This document shows positions 4,214-14,292 of a stretch of DNA of 19,546 bases, piece by piece. Origin of the DNA: Prasinococcaceae sp. CCMP 1430 (taxonomy: Eukaryota; Plantae; Prasinodermophyta); NCBI GenBank assembly GCA_013416795.1, contig RQSC01000034.1, forward strand, positions 32,274-51,819, in the 5' to 3' direction. The notes below the pieces were generated by a model. It searched no databases and was not told the DNA's origin. It saw only the letters and a program-made list of their open reading frames with translations. Made by a program: the position numbers and the translations under genes. Each line of letters opens with the position of its first letter. The first letter of the stretch is position 1.

Positions 4214-4393
4214 GCGCGCGCAAGCCCAAGGATGCAGCGCGCTTTTTTGGTAATTGAATGAATCCGAAGAGAAAAAACAGTCTTAGCATGTCCTTCGCAC
4301 CACCTGCTGCAGGGCCGCAGCGGGCGCCAGCGCCATAGGGTGTCCGTGCTGCATCACGCAGCTTTCGGGCGCCCCGCCCGTCGCTGGGGCGCG

Positions 4394-6143
4394 ATGGTCG
4401 CCGCAGCGGCGCTCGGAGCGCGTCTGCTGCGTGGCGCGGCTGTTGCCGCTGCGCTGGAGGGCAACGCGCGCCGCGCGTTTGCTGCGGCAGCTGCGCCGGC
4501 GCTCAAGGCGCCAGAGCGCTCCGGGCGGTACGCGCGGCTGACTGACGCTGACGTGTCCGCACTGAGCGAGATCGTGGGCGGCGGGTCGGCGGTGGTCACG
4601 GACTCCGACGAGCTCGAGCGCTATAACGTCGACTGGATGCGCAAGTACCGTGGCGCATCGCGGCTTGCGCTGCGGCCAAGCGACGCACAGTCCGCTGCCG
4701 CTGCGCTGCGCTACTGCTCGGACCGCAGACTCGCCGTGGTACCCCAGGGAGGCAACACGGGGCTCGTGGGAGGCTCTGTGCCCGTCTTTGACGAGGTCGT
4801 GCTTTCGGTCTCGGCGATGAATGCCGTGGAGTCTATCGACGCCGACACGGGTGTCGCCGTAGCGCAGGCTGGTGTTGTGCTCGAGACGCTGGACGGCGCG
4901 CTCGCCGAAAAGGGGCTCATGGCGCCGCTGGACCTGGGCGCCAAGGGCACCTGCATGATCGGCGGCAACGTGTCAACAAATGCTGGTGGTCTGCGCCTGC
5001 TACGCTATGGGTCGCTGCACGGTTCGGTGCTCGGCGTCGAGGTTGCGCTTGCAGACGGCTCCGTGCTTGACCTGATGAGCGAGAACCGCAAGGACACCAC
5101 CGGTTACGACCTCAAGAATCTCTTCGTTGGCGCTGAGGGCACGCTCGGCGTGGTCACCCGCGTGGCGCTCCAGGGTGCGCCGCGGCCGGCAGCGGTCAAC
5201 GTCGCGTGGCTCGCGTGCCCATCGTACGCTGCGGTGCTCGACGCGCTGCGCGAGGCACGCGCATCGCTTGGCGAGGTGCTCAGCGCGTTCGAGCTCATCG
5301 ACTCGGCCAGCCTGAGCATGGCGCTTGCGCACCAGCCGCAAAACCGCGACCCCTTGCCCGAGGCGGAGTCGCCTTTCTACGTCCTGGTGGAGACCTCGGG
5401 CTCGGTCAACGACCACGACGTTGCTAAGCTGGAGGCCTTTGTGGAGGCTGCCGTCGGCTCTGGCGCTATTTCTGACGGCGTGCTGGCGTCGAGCGCGCGC
5501 GAATCGGCCGCGCTGTGGGAGCTGCGAGAGGGCATCAGCGATGCGCTCACCGCGCGCGGGGGCGTGCACAAGTATGACGTGTCTTTGCCACTGCGTGACC
5601 TCTACGCTATGGTGGATGATTGCCGAAACACGATGCGCGTCACGGGCCTCGAAGCCGAGGGCGTCACCGTGTGCGGCTATGGACATTGCGGCGACGGAAA
5701 CCTGCACCTCAACATCTCCGCGCCGGGCGTGGATGCTGCGCGTGTAAAGGGCGCGCTCGAGCCCTGGGTCTACGAGTGGGTTCAGGCGCGAAAAGGTGCG
5801 CGAATATTGGTGAGCGCGCGGGTGCGATTGTGCGTCGCTGCTGGAACGCGCGCTCTGCGGGTGCTGACGCAGGCAACACACGCCCAATGCGATGCTGCGC
5901 GACCTTCCGCACGCGCGCGTGCTCACGCACGCAGGCTCGGTTTCCGCCGAGCACGGCCTGGGCCTCATGAAAGCTGAGGCCATTCACTATACCAAGAGCC
6001 CACAGGCAGTGGCCATCATGGCGGCGCTCAAGCGCGCCTTCGATCCGAACCTGATCCTGAACCCGTACAAACTGTTGCCCGCTGCTGCGCTCGAGGAGGC
6101 AGCAAGTTTCCCCATGCCGCAGGTTGTCGGCGTGGGGACATGA
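4394..6143 (+). CDS. D2HGDH: Mitochondrial D-2-hydroxyglutarate dehydrogenase (FAD-linked, VAO/PCMH family), 536 aa, 2 exons
   Basis: Exons 4394-5795 and 5935-6143 (intron GTGCGC..CAG, 139 nt). Motifs [89 protein letters not shown]; Ala/Arg-rich presequence. Confidence 0.93.
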
Positions 6144-7870: not shown

Positions 7871-8045
7871 GTGCCCGCACGAGCGTTCCCGTGCCAGCCG
7901 CGCGCGCCGACGCAGCGGCGCGTGTGAGGGCACTAGCAGCGGCTGCGCGCACCAGGGGGCAGCGGCGACGGGCGCGTCAGGAGGCGGTCACAGGCGGCGC
8001 AGGGCGCGGGCTGTGGGCCTCGGGCCGCGGGCTGCGGGCGGCGCC

Positions 8046-10173
8046 ATGCCGAAGGCGCGGGGCGGGGCGTTTGGCGTGCGCGCGTTCGGCGCGCCCCGCG
8101 CGAGCTCGGACGGGGCGGTGCCGCAGAAACATGGACAGGCAACGAAACACTACGCCGTCGTCTGGCGCAAAGCGCCGCCTCCCTCCGGCGTGCAGGCTGC
8201 AAGGCGCGCAGCGAGGCGCGCGACGTTGTGTGCTGCAGCCGCCTTTGCGTTCGTGATGGTGACGTCGTCAGCAGGGTGGTGGTTCTTCGCGCATCCTAGG
8301 GACCATCAACAGCCTGACATTAGTGCGCAGCAGGCATTGCGGCGGCAGCGGCGACAGAGCGCGTGCGTCTCGAAGGCCAGCGGTGGCCGGGTCGCTGCAC
8401 TCGCTGCAACAGCAGCAGCAGCTGTGGCGGGGTACGACGGGGAGATTGACGATGGTGTGGAGGATTCCTCCGTGTCACCAGATGCGGTCGAGTACGCGCG
8501 GCTTCTCGCTGCCGAGGATTTGCAGCTAGATGCATGCGCAGTCCCGGCGTCGTCGTTGTCTCTCTGGAGCAAACTGCCGCCTGCGCCTGACGCACCATCC
8601 ACCGAGCGATTCGTCGGGAGTTCCTTGCTGCCGGGTTCGAAGACAAGAGCCACCCCAATCACTGCGTATGAGATGCGTGATGTGTGTCTCACAACGATCG
8701 ACAATGGGCCATACACGCGAGACCATCCACGCGACCCGGGCGAGGACGCCCAGCGCGTCGTTGTCGAGCTGACAGGGGACATCACCGAGGGACCCGCTGT
8801 ACCGACCTACGCGAATTATGCTAAGCGTTGCGTGACCTGCTATAATCCAATTGGTGGCGACGGATGGGCATGGGATGCTGCATCGGACTTTGACGGAGAC
8901 CATCTGCGCCCACTGCCGGCGAAATGGAGGCACGATGGGGGAAGGCTCAGCGTGGAAGGACACGCAGCGGGCAAGCGCTGTGGAATGATGTGGACAGCAC
9001 ACGCGACTGCTGCAAATCTAACAGACTACGCCAAATGCGTTCAGCACAACGAAAGAGAGCTCCATGATCGTGCTCAGCACCCTCGCGTACCGCCCCAGGG
9101 ATTCGACGCAGCCGTGTACGTTCGCAATACGACCGTGTCCCTTGCGTGGTATACTGGAAACGTGGGCCATCAATTTTTCGACAGCTTCCTTCCGCTCGTG
9201 TCGCTCCTGAATTCCTCCACCTCTGTGCGTGCTGCTGTAGCCTTGCAGGGCCATGGCGACTGTCCCGAGGACGACGTCTACATCTGCTACTTGCTTCAAG
9301 CGCTCGGTCTGCTGCCGCCCGTCACAGATGGTGCACGACACAGCCCGCACGCCATGACACTGATTCCTGCGCCACCGCCTGGCACTATATTGTGCTTCGA
9401 GCGGCTCATCCTCCCAAAGCATCGTTCGCACACTCGCACAGCCGTCCCTGTGCACGCCCCGAGCGTGCGCGCCGTGCGCTCAGCGCTCACGCAACACATC
9501 TTACCAAGCATTGCTTCCGCAAAGGACGAACGCGGACCCAAGACTGTCCTCCTCTACTCACACGCAGCCTCATCTCGCAGGGTGTGGATTGACGCCGGTG
9601 TGGCTGCGGACAGTGCTCGTGCAATGGGGTTCGATGTGCGCGTGGAGCACGACTTCGGCAGGCTCAGCTTCTCCGAGCAGGCAAGGGCTTTCATGTGGGC
9701 AGACGTGGTCGTCACGGCCCATGGGGCGCCCAGCGCCCACGCGATCTACATGCGCGAGGGCGCCCTGCTGGCAGAGCTAAGGTACGCATGCACGTCCTTG
9801 AGTCAGTGGCGGTGGCGGTGCTCTAGCGAATACGAATGCTTGGCGCGAATTGCTGACACGTAGACGCATGTTGTGTTCACGCCTCCGCCCCAGCTGCGAT
9901 GGGTATACAGTGGTAGGGTGCGGCACGAAAAGCGTGCCATCTCCCGCCGGCCCCGGCATCCTCGCAGCACTCGATGTTGATTTCAGACTCGTGTCGAGAT
10001 GTGACGTGGGCGCCTCTGTCGACGCTTTGTGCGTGACGTGCGAGCCCCCCCCGGGCACGGAGCTGACGTACGCCAACTTCACCTTCAGCGGTGATCGCCT
10101 TGACGCACTGCTCAGACCGATGCTACGCGAACGGCGGCCACGGCAGCGGCCACGGTGGCAGCTGGGATGGTAG
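8046..10173 (+). CDS. Type II membrane glycosyltransferase, GT61/DUF563-like, 671 aa, 2 exons
   Basis: Exons 8046-9781 and 9894-10173 (intron GTACGC..CAG, 112 nt). N-terminal TM TLCAAAAFAFVMVTSSAGWWFF; NVGHQFFDSFLPL; LCFERLILP; SFSEQARAFMWADVVVTAHGA...YMREGALLAEL, matching the GT61 C-terminal signature (sfxEQvxlfxxAdvlvgxHGA..nxxFMxpGavviEi). Confidence 0.8.
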
Positions 10174-10199
10174 CAACAATCGTAGACGATTTTTCTGTA

Positions 10200-12347
10200 T
10201 TACGCGGCAGCAAGCACGCTCTCGACGCACGCGCGCAGGTCGGCGTGCACGCGCACGGGCAGCGCCTCGACAGGCAGCCCAAGTGGCACAGCGGCGTCCG
10301 CCGTGCACGGGAGCTCCATCCCCACCGCGCGCGCCGCTTCCCCGGCGGCCCTACCGTAGCCCGTCGTCACCAAATGCCCCGCAACGCCCGCATGCCTAGC
10401 AGCCAGCATGTCCGTATGTGTATCGCCCACGTACACGGCGCGTGAGCGCGGTATGGCGAACTGCGTGATCGCCTCCTCGAGCATGCGCGGCGACGGCTTG
10501 CGCCGCGACGTGGCCGACGCGGCCGTCTCCGTGGAGAAGATCACCTCGTCGATGTGGGCGCCGCTGGCCTCGTGCAGCAGCTCTCTGAGGCGGTCATGGA
10601 TCTCCTCCAGCTCACGTTCTGAGAGCAGCCCCTTGCCGACGCACGACTGGTTTGTGACGACGCACACTGCCCAGCCGGCATCATTGGCAAGCTTGAGGGC
10701 TTGTGCGGCTCCAGGGATCAGCTGAAGGTCGCCCGCGCGCACGACTCCGGGCGAACCCACATCGCGGTTGATTGTGCCTGCATGTGCGCGCGCGCGCGTG
10801 CCGTGCGCGCGCGTGATGTACGCGCGCGCGCGCGTTCGGCGAGCGAGAGGCACAAGGCGACAAGCGCGACAGTTAGCACGCTGATCCACACCTGGCTCTC
10901 GCATCGCGCGCATCCCAGCGCCTGCCGCGCCCGTACGCGCACGTGCGCACCGTCGCGGTCGACCATCAACAATCCCGCGGGCGCAGGAAGCACCTCGCGC
11001 GTTCCTTCGGCGCTCGCGTCCAGGGCGGCATTCACTGCTCGCAACGCTTCCGTATGTACCGCACCGTTGGATACGCACACCCCACCCCTCGCCGGGTACA
11101 TCTCGCGGCCGACTAGAAGTCCCTCAGACAATGCGTCGTCGGCGCAAGAGCCCACGAGCTGCGGCGCGAGCCTGTCCTCCTCGGCGAAGCCCGTCACCCT
11201 TCCCCCCGCGGCCTCGACGCAAGCTACGCCGGCGGCGTGATCCCAAGTCTTTAGCTTGCTCGCCCAGCCCACCGGGTGCTGGAAGAAGGCGTCTGCGGCG
11301 CCCATCGCCACGAGCGCGTATTTGCACAGGCTGCCGCAGCACTGCCGACGCAGGAGCGGCAGCGCGCCGCCAGGCAGCGCCCACGTCGGTGTTTCGTGGT
11401 CGCTGATGGCCACCACGCCGTCAGCGAGCACCTTGGTGCTCGACACACACACGCGCCACGCGCCGCCGGTGGAATGCAGCGCGTGCGCCGTGCATCCGTG
11501 GCCACGCCTCGAGGCCAGCATCACGCCCATGGTGCCAACCGCGCCACCGGCGGAGGCGGCCGGGTCCAACGGCTCCCACGTGGAGGTCGGCTCAACTTCG
11601 AGGCCCGGCATGCCCATGTAGCCCAGCAGGGGCTCCCCTTCGCCGCCAATGAGCGCAAGGCCGATGACGTACTGCGCGCCGCAGCCGCGAAGGAAGCCCG
11701 CCGTCCCGTCGATGGGGTCGAGGATCCAGCGCGCGCCTTCGACCGGCTTCCCGCGCTCGGTCGGCGCACCGAGGTCAATGGCATCGAGCGCGGCACTCAC
11801 CGAGAGCTCGGGCTCGCCGAGCTCGCGCAGCGCGGCATTTGCCTCCTCCGCGACGGCGCAGGCGAGCGCCTCGCTCGCCGGCAGCCTGAGCGTGTCGGCG
11901 CCCTCCTCTGCCACGAGCGACAACGCCGGGTGGGTGTCGCCGCTGCCGGTACACAGCGCCGCCGCGAGCACGGCTTGGCACGCAAAGTCCGCGACCGTCA
12001 CGGGCGTGCGGTCGCCTTTCTCCAGCACCCCCACGCTCTCCCTCGCGCGCGCGACCATGCGGCAGCACGCTCGCACGGCTGCTTCCGCGCGCTCGGCGAG
12101 CGCCTCCAGCCCGCCATCTCCGCCGCCAATCAGGCGCCCCACGCGGCCGTAGCCACGCGCCCCGCAGGGCACGAGGCTGCGCCCTCCGCCGCCGCCGCCA
12201 TCGCCAGCCGCGCCAGCCGCACCGCGTGCGCGCTGTGCCCCCTCGCACACCCCGACGCCGCTCACCGCTCGCTCGAACCGTTGTGGATGACGCTCCGCAA
12301 ACTCCGCCCAGTCTGGCTGGAGCCCACACAGCGCCGGAGCACCCCAT
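10200..12347 (-). CDS. Fusion protein: SAL1/HAL2-type 3'(2'),5'-bisphosphate nucleotidase (IMPase superfamily) plus C-terminal GmhB/HisB-N-like HAD class IIIA phosphatase; start unresolved
   Basis: Exon ?-10951, intron 10950-10778 (GTGCGC..CAG, branch TGCTAAC), exon 10777-10200. IMPase motifs KGDRTPVTVADF, LVAEE, WILDPIDGT (DPIDGT at 11719-11702), GSLCKY, WDHAAG. HAD motifs LMVDRDG|TIN, VVTNQS, RRKPSPRM, YVGDTHTD. Confidence 0.87.
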
Positions 12348-12746: not shown

Positions 12747-12983
12747 CGGCGGGGCGGCGTGAATTCGAACGGAATTGGAGCCGATCGATTCGACGCCCGG
12801 CGGCGCGCCGGCGGAGCGCGCGCGCGGCACAGGGGGGGCGGCGAGCGAGCGCCCGTGCGACGCTCGCGCGGCCGAGTCCTTTGCCCTTGTCTCGCCCCTT
12901 CCCCCCCACCCCGTCCGAGACCTCCGACCCACGGTGGCCCTCTCGCCCTCGCTGCTCTTCGTGTCTGCGCTCGTCGCGCGGCG

Positions 12984-14292
12984 ATGGCCGGCGGCGGCGC
13001 GCTCGCCGTCGAGGCCGGCGGCGGCGCGCAGCCGCCGTGCCGCTTTTCGCTCGGAGCGTCGGTGCTCGCGTTCCACGGGCCGGCCATCTACGAGGCAAAG
13101 GTGCGCGCCGCCTCGACGGCCGCGCGGGCGACGCGATTGCGGTCCGACGCCGCCACCAGCCGCCGCGCCGCCGCCGCAACTGTCGCTCGGCAGGCGTGCA
13201 CTGACGCCGCGGCGACCCGCCGCCGCCGCTGCCGCCAATGCCAACACCGCGCGCCAATCGCCCGCGCTCGCTCAGGTGATCGCTGCGCAGTACGGCCTGG
13301 ACGCGCCACCCGCCAAGAAGCGCGCCAAGAAGGAGAGCAAGAGCGGCGGCGCGTCCGCTGCGGCGGACAACGGGGCTGGGAACGGGGGCGGCAATCGCCG
13401 CTGGTTCGTCAAACTGCACTGGAAGGGCTGGTCGGCGCGTTGGGAGCAGTGGCAGCCGGAGGATCAAGTCCTCGAGGTGAATCCCGAGAACCGGAAGCTG
13501 CAGAAGCAGACTGAGAAGGGGCTTGTGAAAAAGGGTGTGATTGAGCAAGTGCTCGCAAAGAACGCGGAGGAGGTGAGGCGCAACGCGAGCTCAGTGGCGG
13601 CGGCATCAGCGCCGAGCGGTGGAGCGGCTGCGAGCTCGCCGGCGGCGAACAATAAGCGCAAGGCCGAGCCAACGCCCGCGAAGGGCGGCGATTCAAAGCA
13701 GGGGGGCACCGCCAAGGTCAAGTGCAGCAAGGGCGAAACGCCGGAGAAAGTCAACGCCGACCTGGAAGTCACGCTCGGGCAGCAGCTGAAGAAGCGCATG
13801 CTCGACGACTACAACCGGAGCAAGGGCACCCTGCTCCCGCTGCCGCGCCCCCACAGCGTCCGCGACGTGCTGCAGGCGTATGTGGACACCAAGGCAGCCT
13901 CGCGGAAGAGGGCAGAGGCGAGCGGGCAGCCCGATACGGTCGGCGAGCTGCAGGAGGGCCTGCTGTCCTACTTTGACGCGGCGCTGCCCAAGATCCTGCT
14001 CTACAACAGCGAGCGCGCGGAGCACGCGGCCGCGATTGATCGCGCGCGCGGTGGAGCGACCCCGTCGGACATCTACGGCGCTGAGCATCTCCTGCGGCTG
14101 TTGGTGAGGCTGCCGGACCTGCTCAAGTACTCGCAGGTCGAGGCGGCGGTCGCCGAGCTGCTCCAGGCGAGCGTGGCAGACCTGCTCAAATTTCTGCACA
14201 GCAACAAGGGCCTGGAGATGTTCGCGCCGGCGGACAAGGCACCTGGCAAGGACAAGGACAAGGGCGCTGCCGCTGCCGACGCCGCGGTGTAA
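12984..14292 (+). CDS. MRG1: MRG15/EAF3-family chromatin reader (chromo-barrel plus MRG domain), 377 aa, 2 exons
   Basis: Exons 12984-13100 and 13276-14292 (intron GTGCGC..CAG, 175 nt). VLAFHGPAIYEAK|V...LHWKGWSARWEQWQPEDQVL; MRG domain LKKRMLDDY, LLPLPRPHSVRDVL, SYFDAALPKILLY, PSDIYGAEHLLRLLVRLP. Confidence 0.93.

Follow-up and report, generated by a model that had tools for sequence, protein, structure and literature searches.

Gene structure of the locus

The window analysed here is a 19,546-nt stretch of contig RQSC01000034.1 with a high GC content (0.60-0.75). Two overlapping ORFs on its minus strand, a 515-codon ORF (10718-12265) carrying an inositol-monophosphatase (IMPase)-family domain and an ORF at 10200-11078 carrying a HAD domain, belong to one two-exon gene of Prasinoderma coloniale, the product of which is about 635 residues long after the two model corrections described below (Table 1). 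The first exon ends in ...LLMVDRD followed by G|GTGCGC, and 173 nt later the sequence continues as ...CAG|GC ACA ATC. Splicing from 10951 to 10777 therefore reads DRDG-TINRDVGSPG, and HAD motif I (DxDGT) is restored across the exon boundary.

A previous interpretation based on the letters of the window (hereafter the sequence-only reading) had placed the start of the HAD nucleophile motif, DRDG, in the exon and frame of the IMPase domain and had joined it to TINRDVG through a canonical 173-nt intron. The former is seen directly in the sequence, and the latter is confirmed by the GT..AG ends of the intron and by a spliced contig from run X1. The extent of 10200-12346 that it gave was correct at the stop end, while the start has to be moved to the ATG at 12201, which matches the N-terminus of the published protein. 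The ATG at 12347-12345 (-) is out of frame with the domain, and a trial intron at 12265-12177 fails to mend the frame. A reading of the intron as a repeated "introner" element is not supported, as only short (CG)n-type stretches match it elsewhere in the window. Low-complexity sequence would account for a depth peak of X10 at 10736-10852.

Table 1. Positions of the features of the fused phosphatase gene in the window.
Feature	Position	Strand	Remarks
Exon 1	10951-12201	-	Arg/Ala-rich presequence, IMPase-family domain, short, conserved linker and HAD start
Probable start ATG	12199-12201	-	Reads MAAAAEGAASCPAGR, the first 15 residues of published PRCOL_00001073
Assembly discrepancy, coding 5' region	12126-12155 (30 nt)	-	109 nt in the X10 DNA contig and in locus L005
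IMPase-superfamily, SAL1/HAL2-like domain	11040-12106	-	KGDRTPVTVAD, VAEE, DPIDGT..GFLRG, CCGSLCKY, WDHAAG
Alternative donor of the published model	codon GGT 11063-11065, exon end 11065, GT 11064-11063	-	
HAD DxD nucleophile motif, exon 1	Asp codons 10960-10958 and 10954-10952	-	
Intron	10778-10950	-	173 nt, GT-AG, phase 1; splits HAD motif I (DRDG/TIN)
Exon 2	10200-10777	-	Remaining HAD-IIIA domain (TNQS, RRKP, GDTHTD) and clade-specific C-terminal tail
Stop TAA	10202-10200	-	End of exon 2

Support for the splice junction

RNA reads spanning 10951/10777 had been named as one way to verify the fusion, and record 2 of run X1 carries exactly that junction: this 490-nt contig aligns to 10320-10776 and 10950-10982, leaving out exactly the 173 nt, with gap ends CT..AC on the plus strand, equivalent to GT..AG on the gene strand. 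Because spliced junctions of both neighbouring genes are also present in X1 (one joint from 13098 to 13274, and one contig that leaves the window at 9892 into the upstream exon of the plus-strand gene), X1 is RNA-derived.

Relatives of the gene read LLLMVDRDGTINRDVGSPGV uninterrupted, both in metagenome DNA (P0002) and in Tetraselmis transcripts (P0004 and P0431). In the marine metagenome protein P0002, 67% identical, a single genomic ORF runs from within the IMPase domain, of which it covers the C-terminal half, through the entire HAD domain. Its locus (L001:3471-5508) is intronless at the DRDG site and has an intron inside the IMPase domain, at about 4300-4400; intron positions therefore differ between close relatives. 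The same order of the two domains was identified in transcript proteins of Tetraselmis astigmatica (MMETSP0804), in a gene model of T. striata and in several single ORFs of 548-599 residues on eukaryote-like metagenome contigs. The spliced contig, the uninterrupted motif in relatives and the shared domain order are three independent lines of evidence that bear out the earlier claim that the fusion is not a gene-merging artefact.

The locus might instead make mainly an IMPase-only protein through intron retention, with the fused form as a minor product. Contigs of RNA type, X2 (10424-10958) and the metatranscriptome contig X3 (10916-10989), run unspliced over the splice sites, and the retained frame stays open for 76 further codons, past the hydrophobic stretch VWISVLTVALVALCLSLA, to a stop at 10720-10718. 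However, X2 and X3 may represent DNA or pre-mRNA as well as intron retention, and X1, X2 and X3 are all assembled contigs that give no proportions of spliced to unspliced transcript. Given a spliced contig, fused orthologues that lack an intron at this position and HAD motifs that are clearly constrained, a predominantly IMPase-only product appears quite unlikely.

Published gene model and assembly discrepancy

The EukProt protein PRCOL_00001073-RA (P0434, 597 aa) is identical to the translation of the window over 354 + 191 residues. It joins ...VCVSNG to TINRD, with 38 residues dropped, and owing to this wrong donor (11065|11064) it lacks the HAD DxD nucleophile. Donor 11065|11064 is not supported by RNA contigs (X1 records 2 and 3) or by any of the orthologues, all of which back donor 10951|10950.

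At the site of the 30-nt discrepancy (Table 1), the insert is likewise longer than the window's in L005, an independent contig of low coverage, and the published protein has 37 extra residues, an exact fit to 1+109+1 nt. It is because 30 nt replace 109 nt that the frame of the window from ATG 12201 meets a stop. A segment of 33 nt at 12122-12154 of the window recurs within unrelated contigs of three runs. The difference is probably a local assembly (patch) error in the window. The practical gain of these comparisons is the recognition of a public gene model that lacks the HAD nucleophile and of a coding 5' end that is probably misassembled in the window. L005 itself (ENA ERZ28548065, contig chicken_3, about 1x coverage) is near-identical to the Prasinoderma locus and occurs in a chicken-labelled assembly, likely through contamination or environmental carry-over.

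The N-terminal half is a SAL1-like paralogue

The N-terminal half is a member of the Pfam family Inositol_P (PF00459), which matches 10952-12265 (-) at 1.2e-27 (97.6 bits versus a cut-off of 27), and both the window and every fusion contain the metal-binding motifs DPxDGT and WDxAAG. Among curated models, TIGR01330 (HAL2-type bisphosphate nucleotidase) fits best. The window scores 136 bits and the domain of the orthologue P0142 scores 186 bits, below the cut-off of 267 bits though far above the scores of the CysQ, HisN and IMPase models. The best solved relatives are Arabidopsis SAL1 (8f9y), yeast Hal2p and the PAP phosphatase of Entamoeba.

A tree of 50 IMPase domains is split into two clades with 100% SH-aLRT. 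Plant SAL1 and bacterial members of the HAL2 family make up one clade, marked by the motif DSQxKY. The other is characterized by CCGSL[CV]KY and unites all fusions with stand-alone proteins from a grass, a liverwort, Spirogloea, Closterium and Chloropicon. By this placement the N-terminal half is a SAL1 paralogue and not SAL1 itself. The identity proposed by the sequence-only reading, SAL1/HAL2 PAP phosphatase, is thus retained as far as an IMPase-family, PAP-phosphatase-like domain is concerned and has to be given up for SAL1/HAL2 proper, considering both the sister-clade position and the TIGR01330 scores.

Compared with Arabidopsis SAL1 and yeast Hal2p (8f9y, 1ka1), the algal domain has the same fold (31% identity; TM 0.82 by target) and retains VAEE, DPIDGT and WDHAAG, which bind metal, as well as the family-typical GT.GFLRG..QY segment. 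It differs in having CCGSLCKY in place of (I/L)DSQxKY, one extra residue in GFLRG..QY and an added C-terminal HAD domain, in addition to its separate clade and its score below the TIGR01330 cut-off. In GSLxKY, both Ser and Lys of the HAL2/SAL1 motif DSQxKY are retained, and the motif resembles that of CysQ, GSSLKF.

The stand-alone green paralogues (Urochloa, Riccia, Spirogloea, Closterium and Chloropicon) share the clade, the CCGSLCKY motif and an N-terminal extension with the fusion; unlike it, these proteins of the "putative PAP-specific phosphatase, mitochondrial" type have no HAD domain. The ESM Atlas cluster nearest to the N-terminal domain of the fusion, by features and shape, is a streptophyte cluster with this same annotation. 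Arabidopsis At4g05090 is presumably a member of the CCGSLCKY paralogue clade. A literature search found no functional study of this CCGSLCKY-type paralogue, and one paper lists At4g05090 and AHL as the two SAL homologues (PMC11638000).

The C-terminal half belongs to an algal HAD-IIIA clade

Membership of the C-terminal half in the HAD superfamily is indicated by Pfam matches on 10203-10775 (-) to Hydrolase_like (3.7e-14), Hydrolase (7.9e-13) and HAD_2 (1.5e-11) and by four HAD motifs that are present after splicing (DRDGT, TNQS, RRKP and GDTHTD) and are kept in all complete fusions. Two HAD-IIIA models are passed, TIGR01662 (71-95 bits versus 44.6) and TIGR01656 (92-113 versus 84.15). More specific models fail, both those for GmhB (PRK08942, 100-136 bits versus 178; TIGR00213, 52-82 versus 149.6; NF050049, 36-65 versus 250) and that for HisB-N (TIGR01261, hisB_Nterm, 35-53 versus 140), and the scores remain below the cut-offs when complete orthologous domains are used.

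The best solved relatives are GmhB structures (4pnh, 3l8h and 2gmw), with a TM of 0.92 and 33% identity to 3l8h. Together with bacterial GmhB (3l8h, 4pnh, 2gmw) and HisB-N (2fpr), the algal domain adopts a HAD-IIIA fold of the C0 type, with all four HAD motifs and an Arg-Lys pair preceding Pro (RRKP); it differs from them by an extra conserved C-terminal tail (LP.E.LP..HADL) and by the absence of the CxH/CxC zinc cap, a unique mark of GmhB and HisB-N (PMC9798254). The corresponding loop of the window reads FSTETAASATSRRKP, and the Cys/His set was found in no orthologue, nor anywhere in the algal clade.

In a tree of 74 HAD domains, the HAD domain of the fusions groups, with 94% SH-aLRT, with stand-alone proteins bearing N-terminal extensions. 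Named stand-alone members are from diatoms and other MMETSP organisms, and the clade also takes in a small group of bacterial proteins in which the HAD domain is fused to DUF218. The ESM Atlas, too, has a Chlorophyta cluster of HAD proteins that stand alone. The stand-alone algal proteins (Thalassiosira, Conticribra, MMETSP taxa and the Chlorophyta cluster) and the bacterial HAD-DUF218 proteins share with the fusion the DRDG.IN.D.G.PGV start, the C-terminal tail and the lack of the zinc cap, and differ from it in having no IMPase domain. In the closest non-algal relatives (bacterial proteins P0147-P0149 and P0151), a membrane segment links the HAD domain to DUF218 (PF02698). Judged from its sequence, the C-terminal half is neither a genuine GmhB nor a genuine HisB-N and represents a member of an algal clade that usually stands alone. 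The earlier assignment to a GmhB-like HAD phosphatase accordingly holds at the level of a GmhB-like HAD-IIIA domain and fails for GmhB or HisB-N proper.

These data bear on two more specific assignments. If the HAD half were a true D-glycero-D-manno-heptose-1,7-bisphosphate phosphatase (GmhB), it could belong to a heptose-nucleotide pathway that supplies algal surface glycans, while the PAP phosphatase served sulfation. The best NCBIfam model is indeed the GmhB equivalog PRK08942 and the best solved structures are GmhB, but that score is under the 178-bit cut-off and the zinc cap is missing throughout the algal clade. Moreover, NDP-heptose enzymes outside bacteria have been reported for protostome animals and not for algae, and according to the same reports no such phosphatase turned up in eukaryotes (PMC11461863, PMC11573728); a link to these enzymes is not supported for algae, as the commentaries name protostomes and no phosphatase. 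We regard a true GmhB as unlikely.

It is very unlikely that the fusion is the histidinol-phosphate phosphatase of the alga by one or both halves. Both superfamilies include such enzymes, and TIGR01656, named "histidinol-phosphate phosphatase domain", is passed. This model, however, describes a subfamily domain that covers GmhB too, and the specific models fail for the HAD half (hisB_Nterm, as above) and for the IMPase half (HisN, 51-79 bits versus 275). HisB-N is a compact, young subcluster that arose from beta-GmhB in Proteobacteria (PMC9798254), and HisN and HISN7 are far more distant from the N-terminal domain than PAP phosphatases are.

Distribution of the fusion

A fusion profile searched against 1.84 billion protein representatives matched about six clusters (50% identity) over both domains, and a word-indexed search returned about a dozen fusion clusters at 90% identity. 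None of the ESM Atlas clusters of at least 50 members contained both domains. Named carriers are Prasinoderma (Prasinodermophyta) and Tetraselmis (Chlorodendrophyceae), and the others are picoeukaryote contigs from lakes and seas; the picoalgal fusion contigs are eukaryote-like and poor in introns. In the IMPase tree, the fusions form one group except for Tetraselmis, and in the weakly resolved HAD tree they form three groups; starred branches of both trees leave room for a single origin of the fusion.

A widespread architecture would have spoken against the novelty claimed earlier, and the survey instead found a rare one, confined to about six clusters and a few green algae. No description of an IMPase + HAD-IIIA fusion or of a Prasinoderma SAL1 was found in the literature covered, which lies mostly outside subscription journals. 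The earlier view that the architecture was not known to have been described agrees with this literature, but the fusion had not gone entirely unseen, as public gene models of Prasinoderma and Tetraselmis display it. This fusion of two known kinds of phosphatase is real, rare and undescribed in the papers found.

Catalytic motifs and predicted structure

All nine motifs scored, catalytic or on the substrate side (K.D..PVT.AD, VAEE, DPxDGT, GSLxKY, WDHAAG, DxDGxxN, TNQS, RKP and GDxxxD) are kept in every complete full-length fusion, in agreement with the earlier statement that the catalytic motifs of both domains are intact. The sole exception of complete length is the mis-spliced published model, which has no DxD, and two metagenome fusions truncated at the C-terminus miss just the last HAD motif. 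The locus thus very probably encodes a genuine fusion of two active phosphatases, activity being predicted from the conserved motifs.

The AlphaFold model of the orthologue P0142 has a mean pLDDT of 91.3 and a pTM of 0.87, with disorder at residues 1-25 only. The model suggests that the two domains hold a fixed mutual orientation as one rigid unit. No solved structure chain covering both halves was found. The N-termini of the orthologues are similarly rich in Arg, Ala and Ser.

Proposed function

IMPase-fold enzymes employ a metal-activated water and are sensitive to Li+. HAD enzymes depend on Mg2+ and attack with an Asp nucleophile (PMC9798254). Since both halves come from well-known phosphatase superfamilies, the chemistry is not new. 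The explanation that we favour as a whole, with somewhat better than even confidence, is a fused enzyme of the PAP-phosphatase and HAD-IIIA kinds acting on bisphosphates. Judging by its composition, the putative Arg/Ala-rich presequence may direct the protein to an organelle. The N-terminal domain would strip PAP of its 3'-phosphate, using the Li-sensitive two-metal mechanism typical of the family. PAP is the moderately probable substrate of this domain, a prediction drawn from the closest family match and from the Ser and Lys that GSLxKY keeps; against it, the sister clade has an altered substrate-side motif. The Mg-dependent HAD domain would cleave a phosphomonoester via a phospho-aspartate, possibly on a small bisphosphorylated metabolite of the GmhB-substrate type. 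Any particular substrate for this half is doubtful at best, and the missing zinc cap, which shapes the substrate site of GmhB and HisB-N, argues against a substrate of the GmhB type.

The fusion might couple the two steps such that one class of bisphosphate loses both phosphates, for example from PAP to AMP to adenosine, or from a sugar bisphosphate. Given that both parent families are bisphosphate specialists and that a rigid unit is predicted, double dephosphorylation would be the most likely form of coupling; alternatively, two toxic by-products may be handled at one site. Land plants keep a protein of the N-terminal type with no land-plant name among the matches of the HAD clade, and the HAD protein is encoded by a stand-alone gene in diatoms and many algae. 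Both families thus occur separately, so the two activities need not be coupled. The coupling to sulfated scale or wall glycans, heptose or histidinol phosphate suggested by the sequence-only reading finds no support beyond the names of the families.

A natural fusion is one of the few clues from sequence that enzymes work together. As a tentative reading, which we would sooner doubt than accept, the fusion may serve as a Rosetta stone: the land-plant-type "mitochondrial PAP-specific phosphatase" paralogue and the zinc-less GmhB-like algal HAD protein would act consecutively in one organellar pathway. If true, such a pathway would amount to a new step of metabolite clearance in plastids or mitochondria, the full dephosphorylation of a bisphosphate, with candidates including PAP from phosphopantetheinyl transfer and sulfation, converted to adenosine, and a damaged or regulatory sugar bisphosphate. 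The fusion also suggests which two activities could be assayed for the plant SAL-like paralogue and for the widespread algal HAD family.

Neighbouring genes

The plus-strand neighbour at 8013-10283 encodes a GT61-type glycosyltransferase (Pfam match on its copy in L005). Splicing from about 9790 leads to a last exon at 9892-10283, and the 3' end of the gene overlaps that of the phosphatase gene by about 80 nt in convergent orientation. The divergent neighbour on the other side, at 12775-14292 (+), encodes an MRG/MSL3 chromodomain protein, and an RNA contig of run X1 backs its GT..AG intron at 13099-13273.
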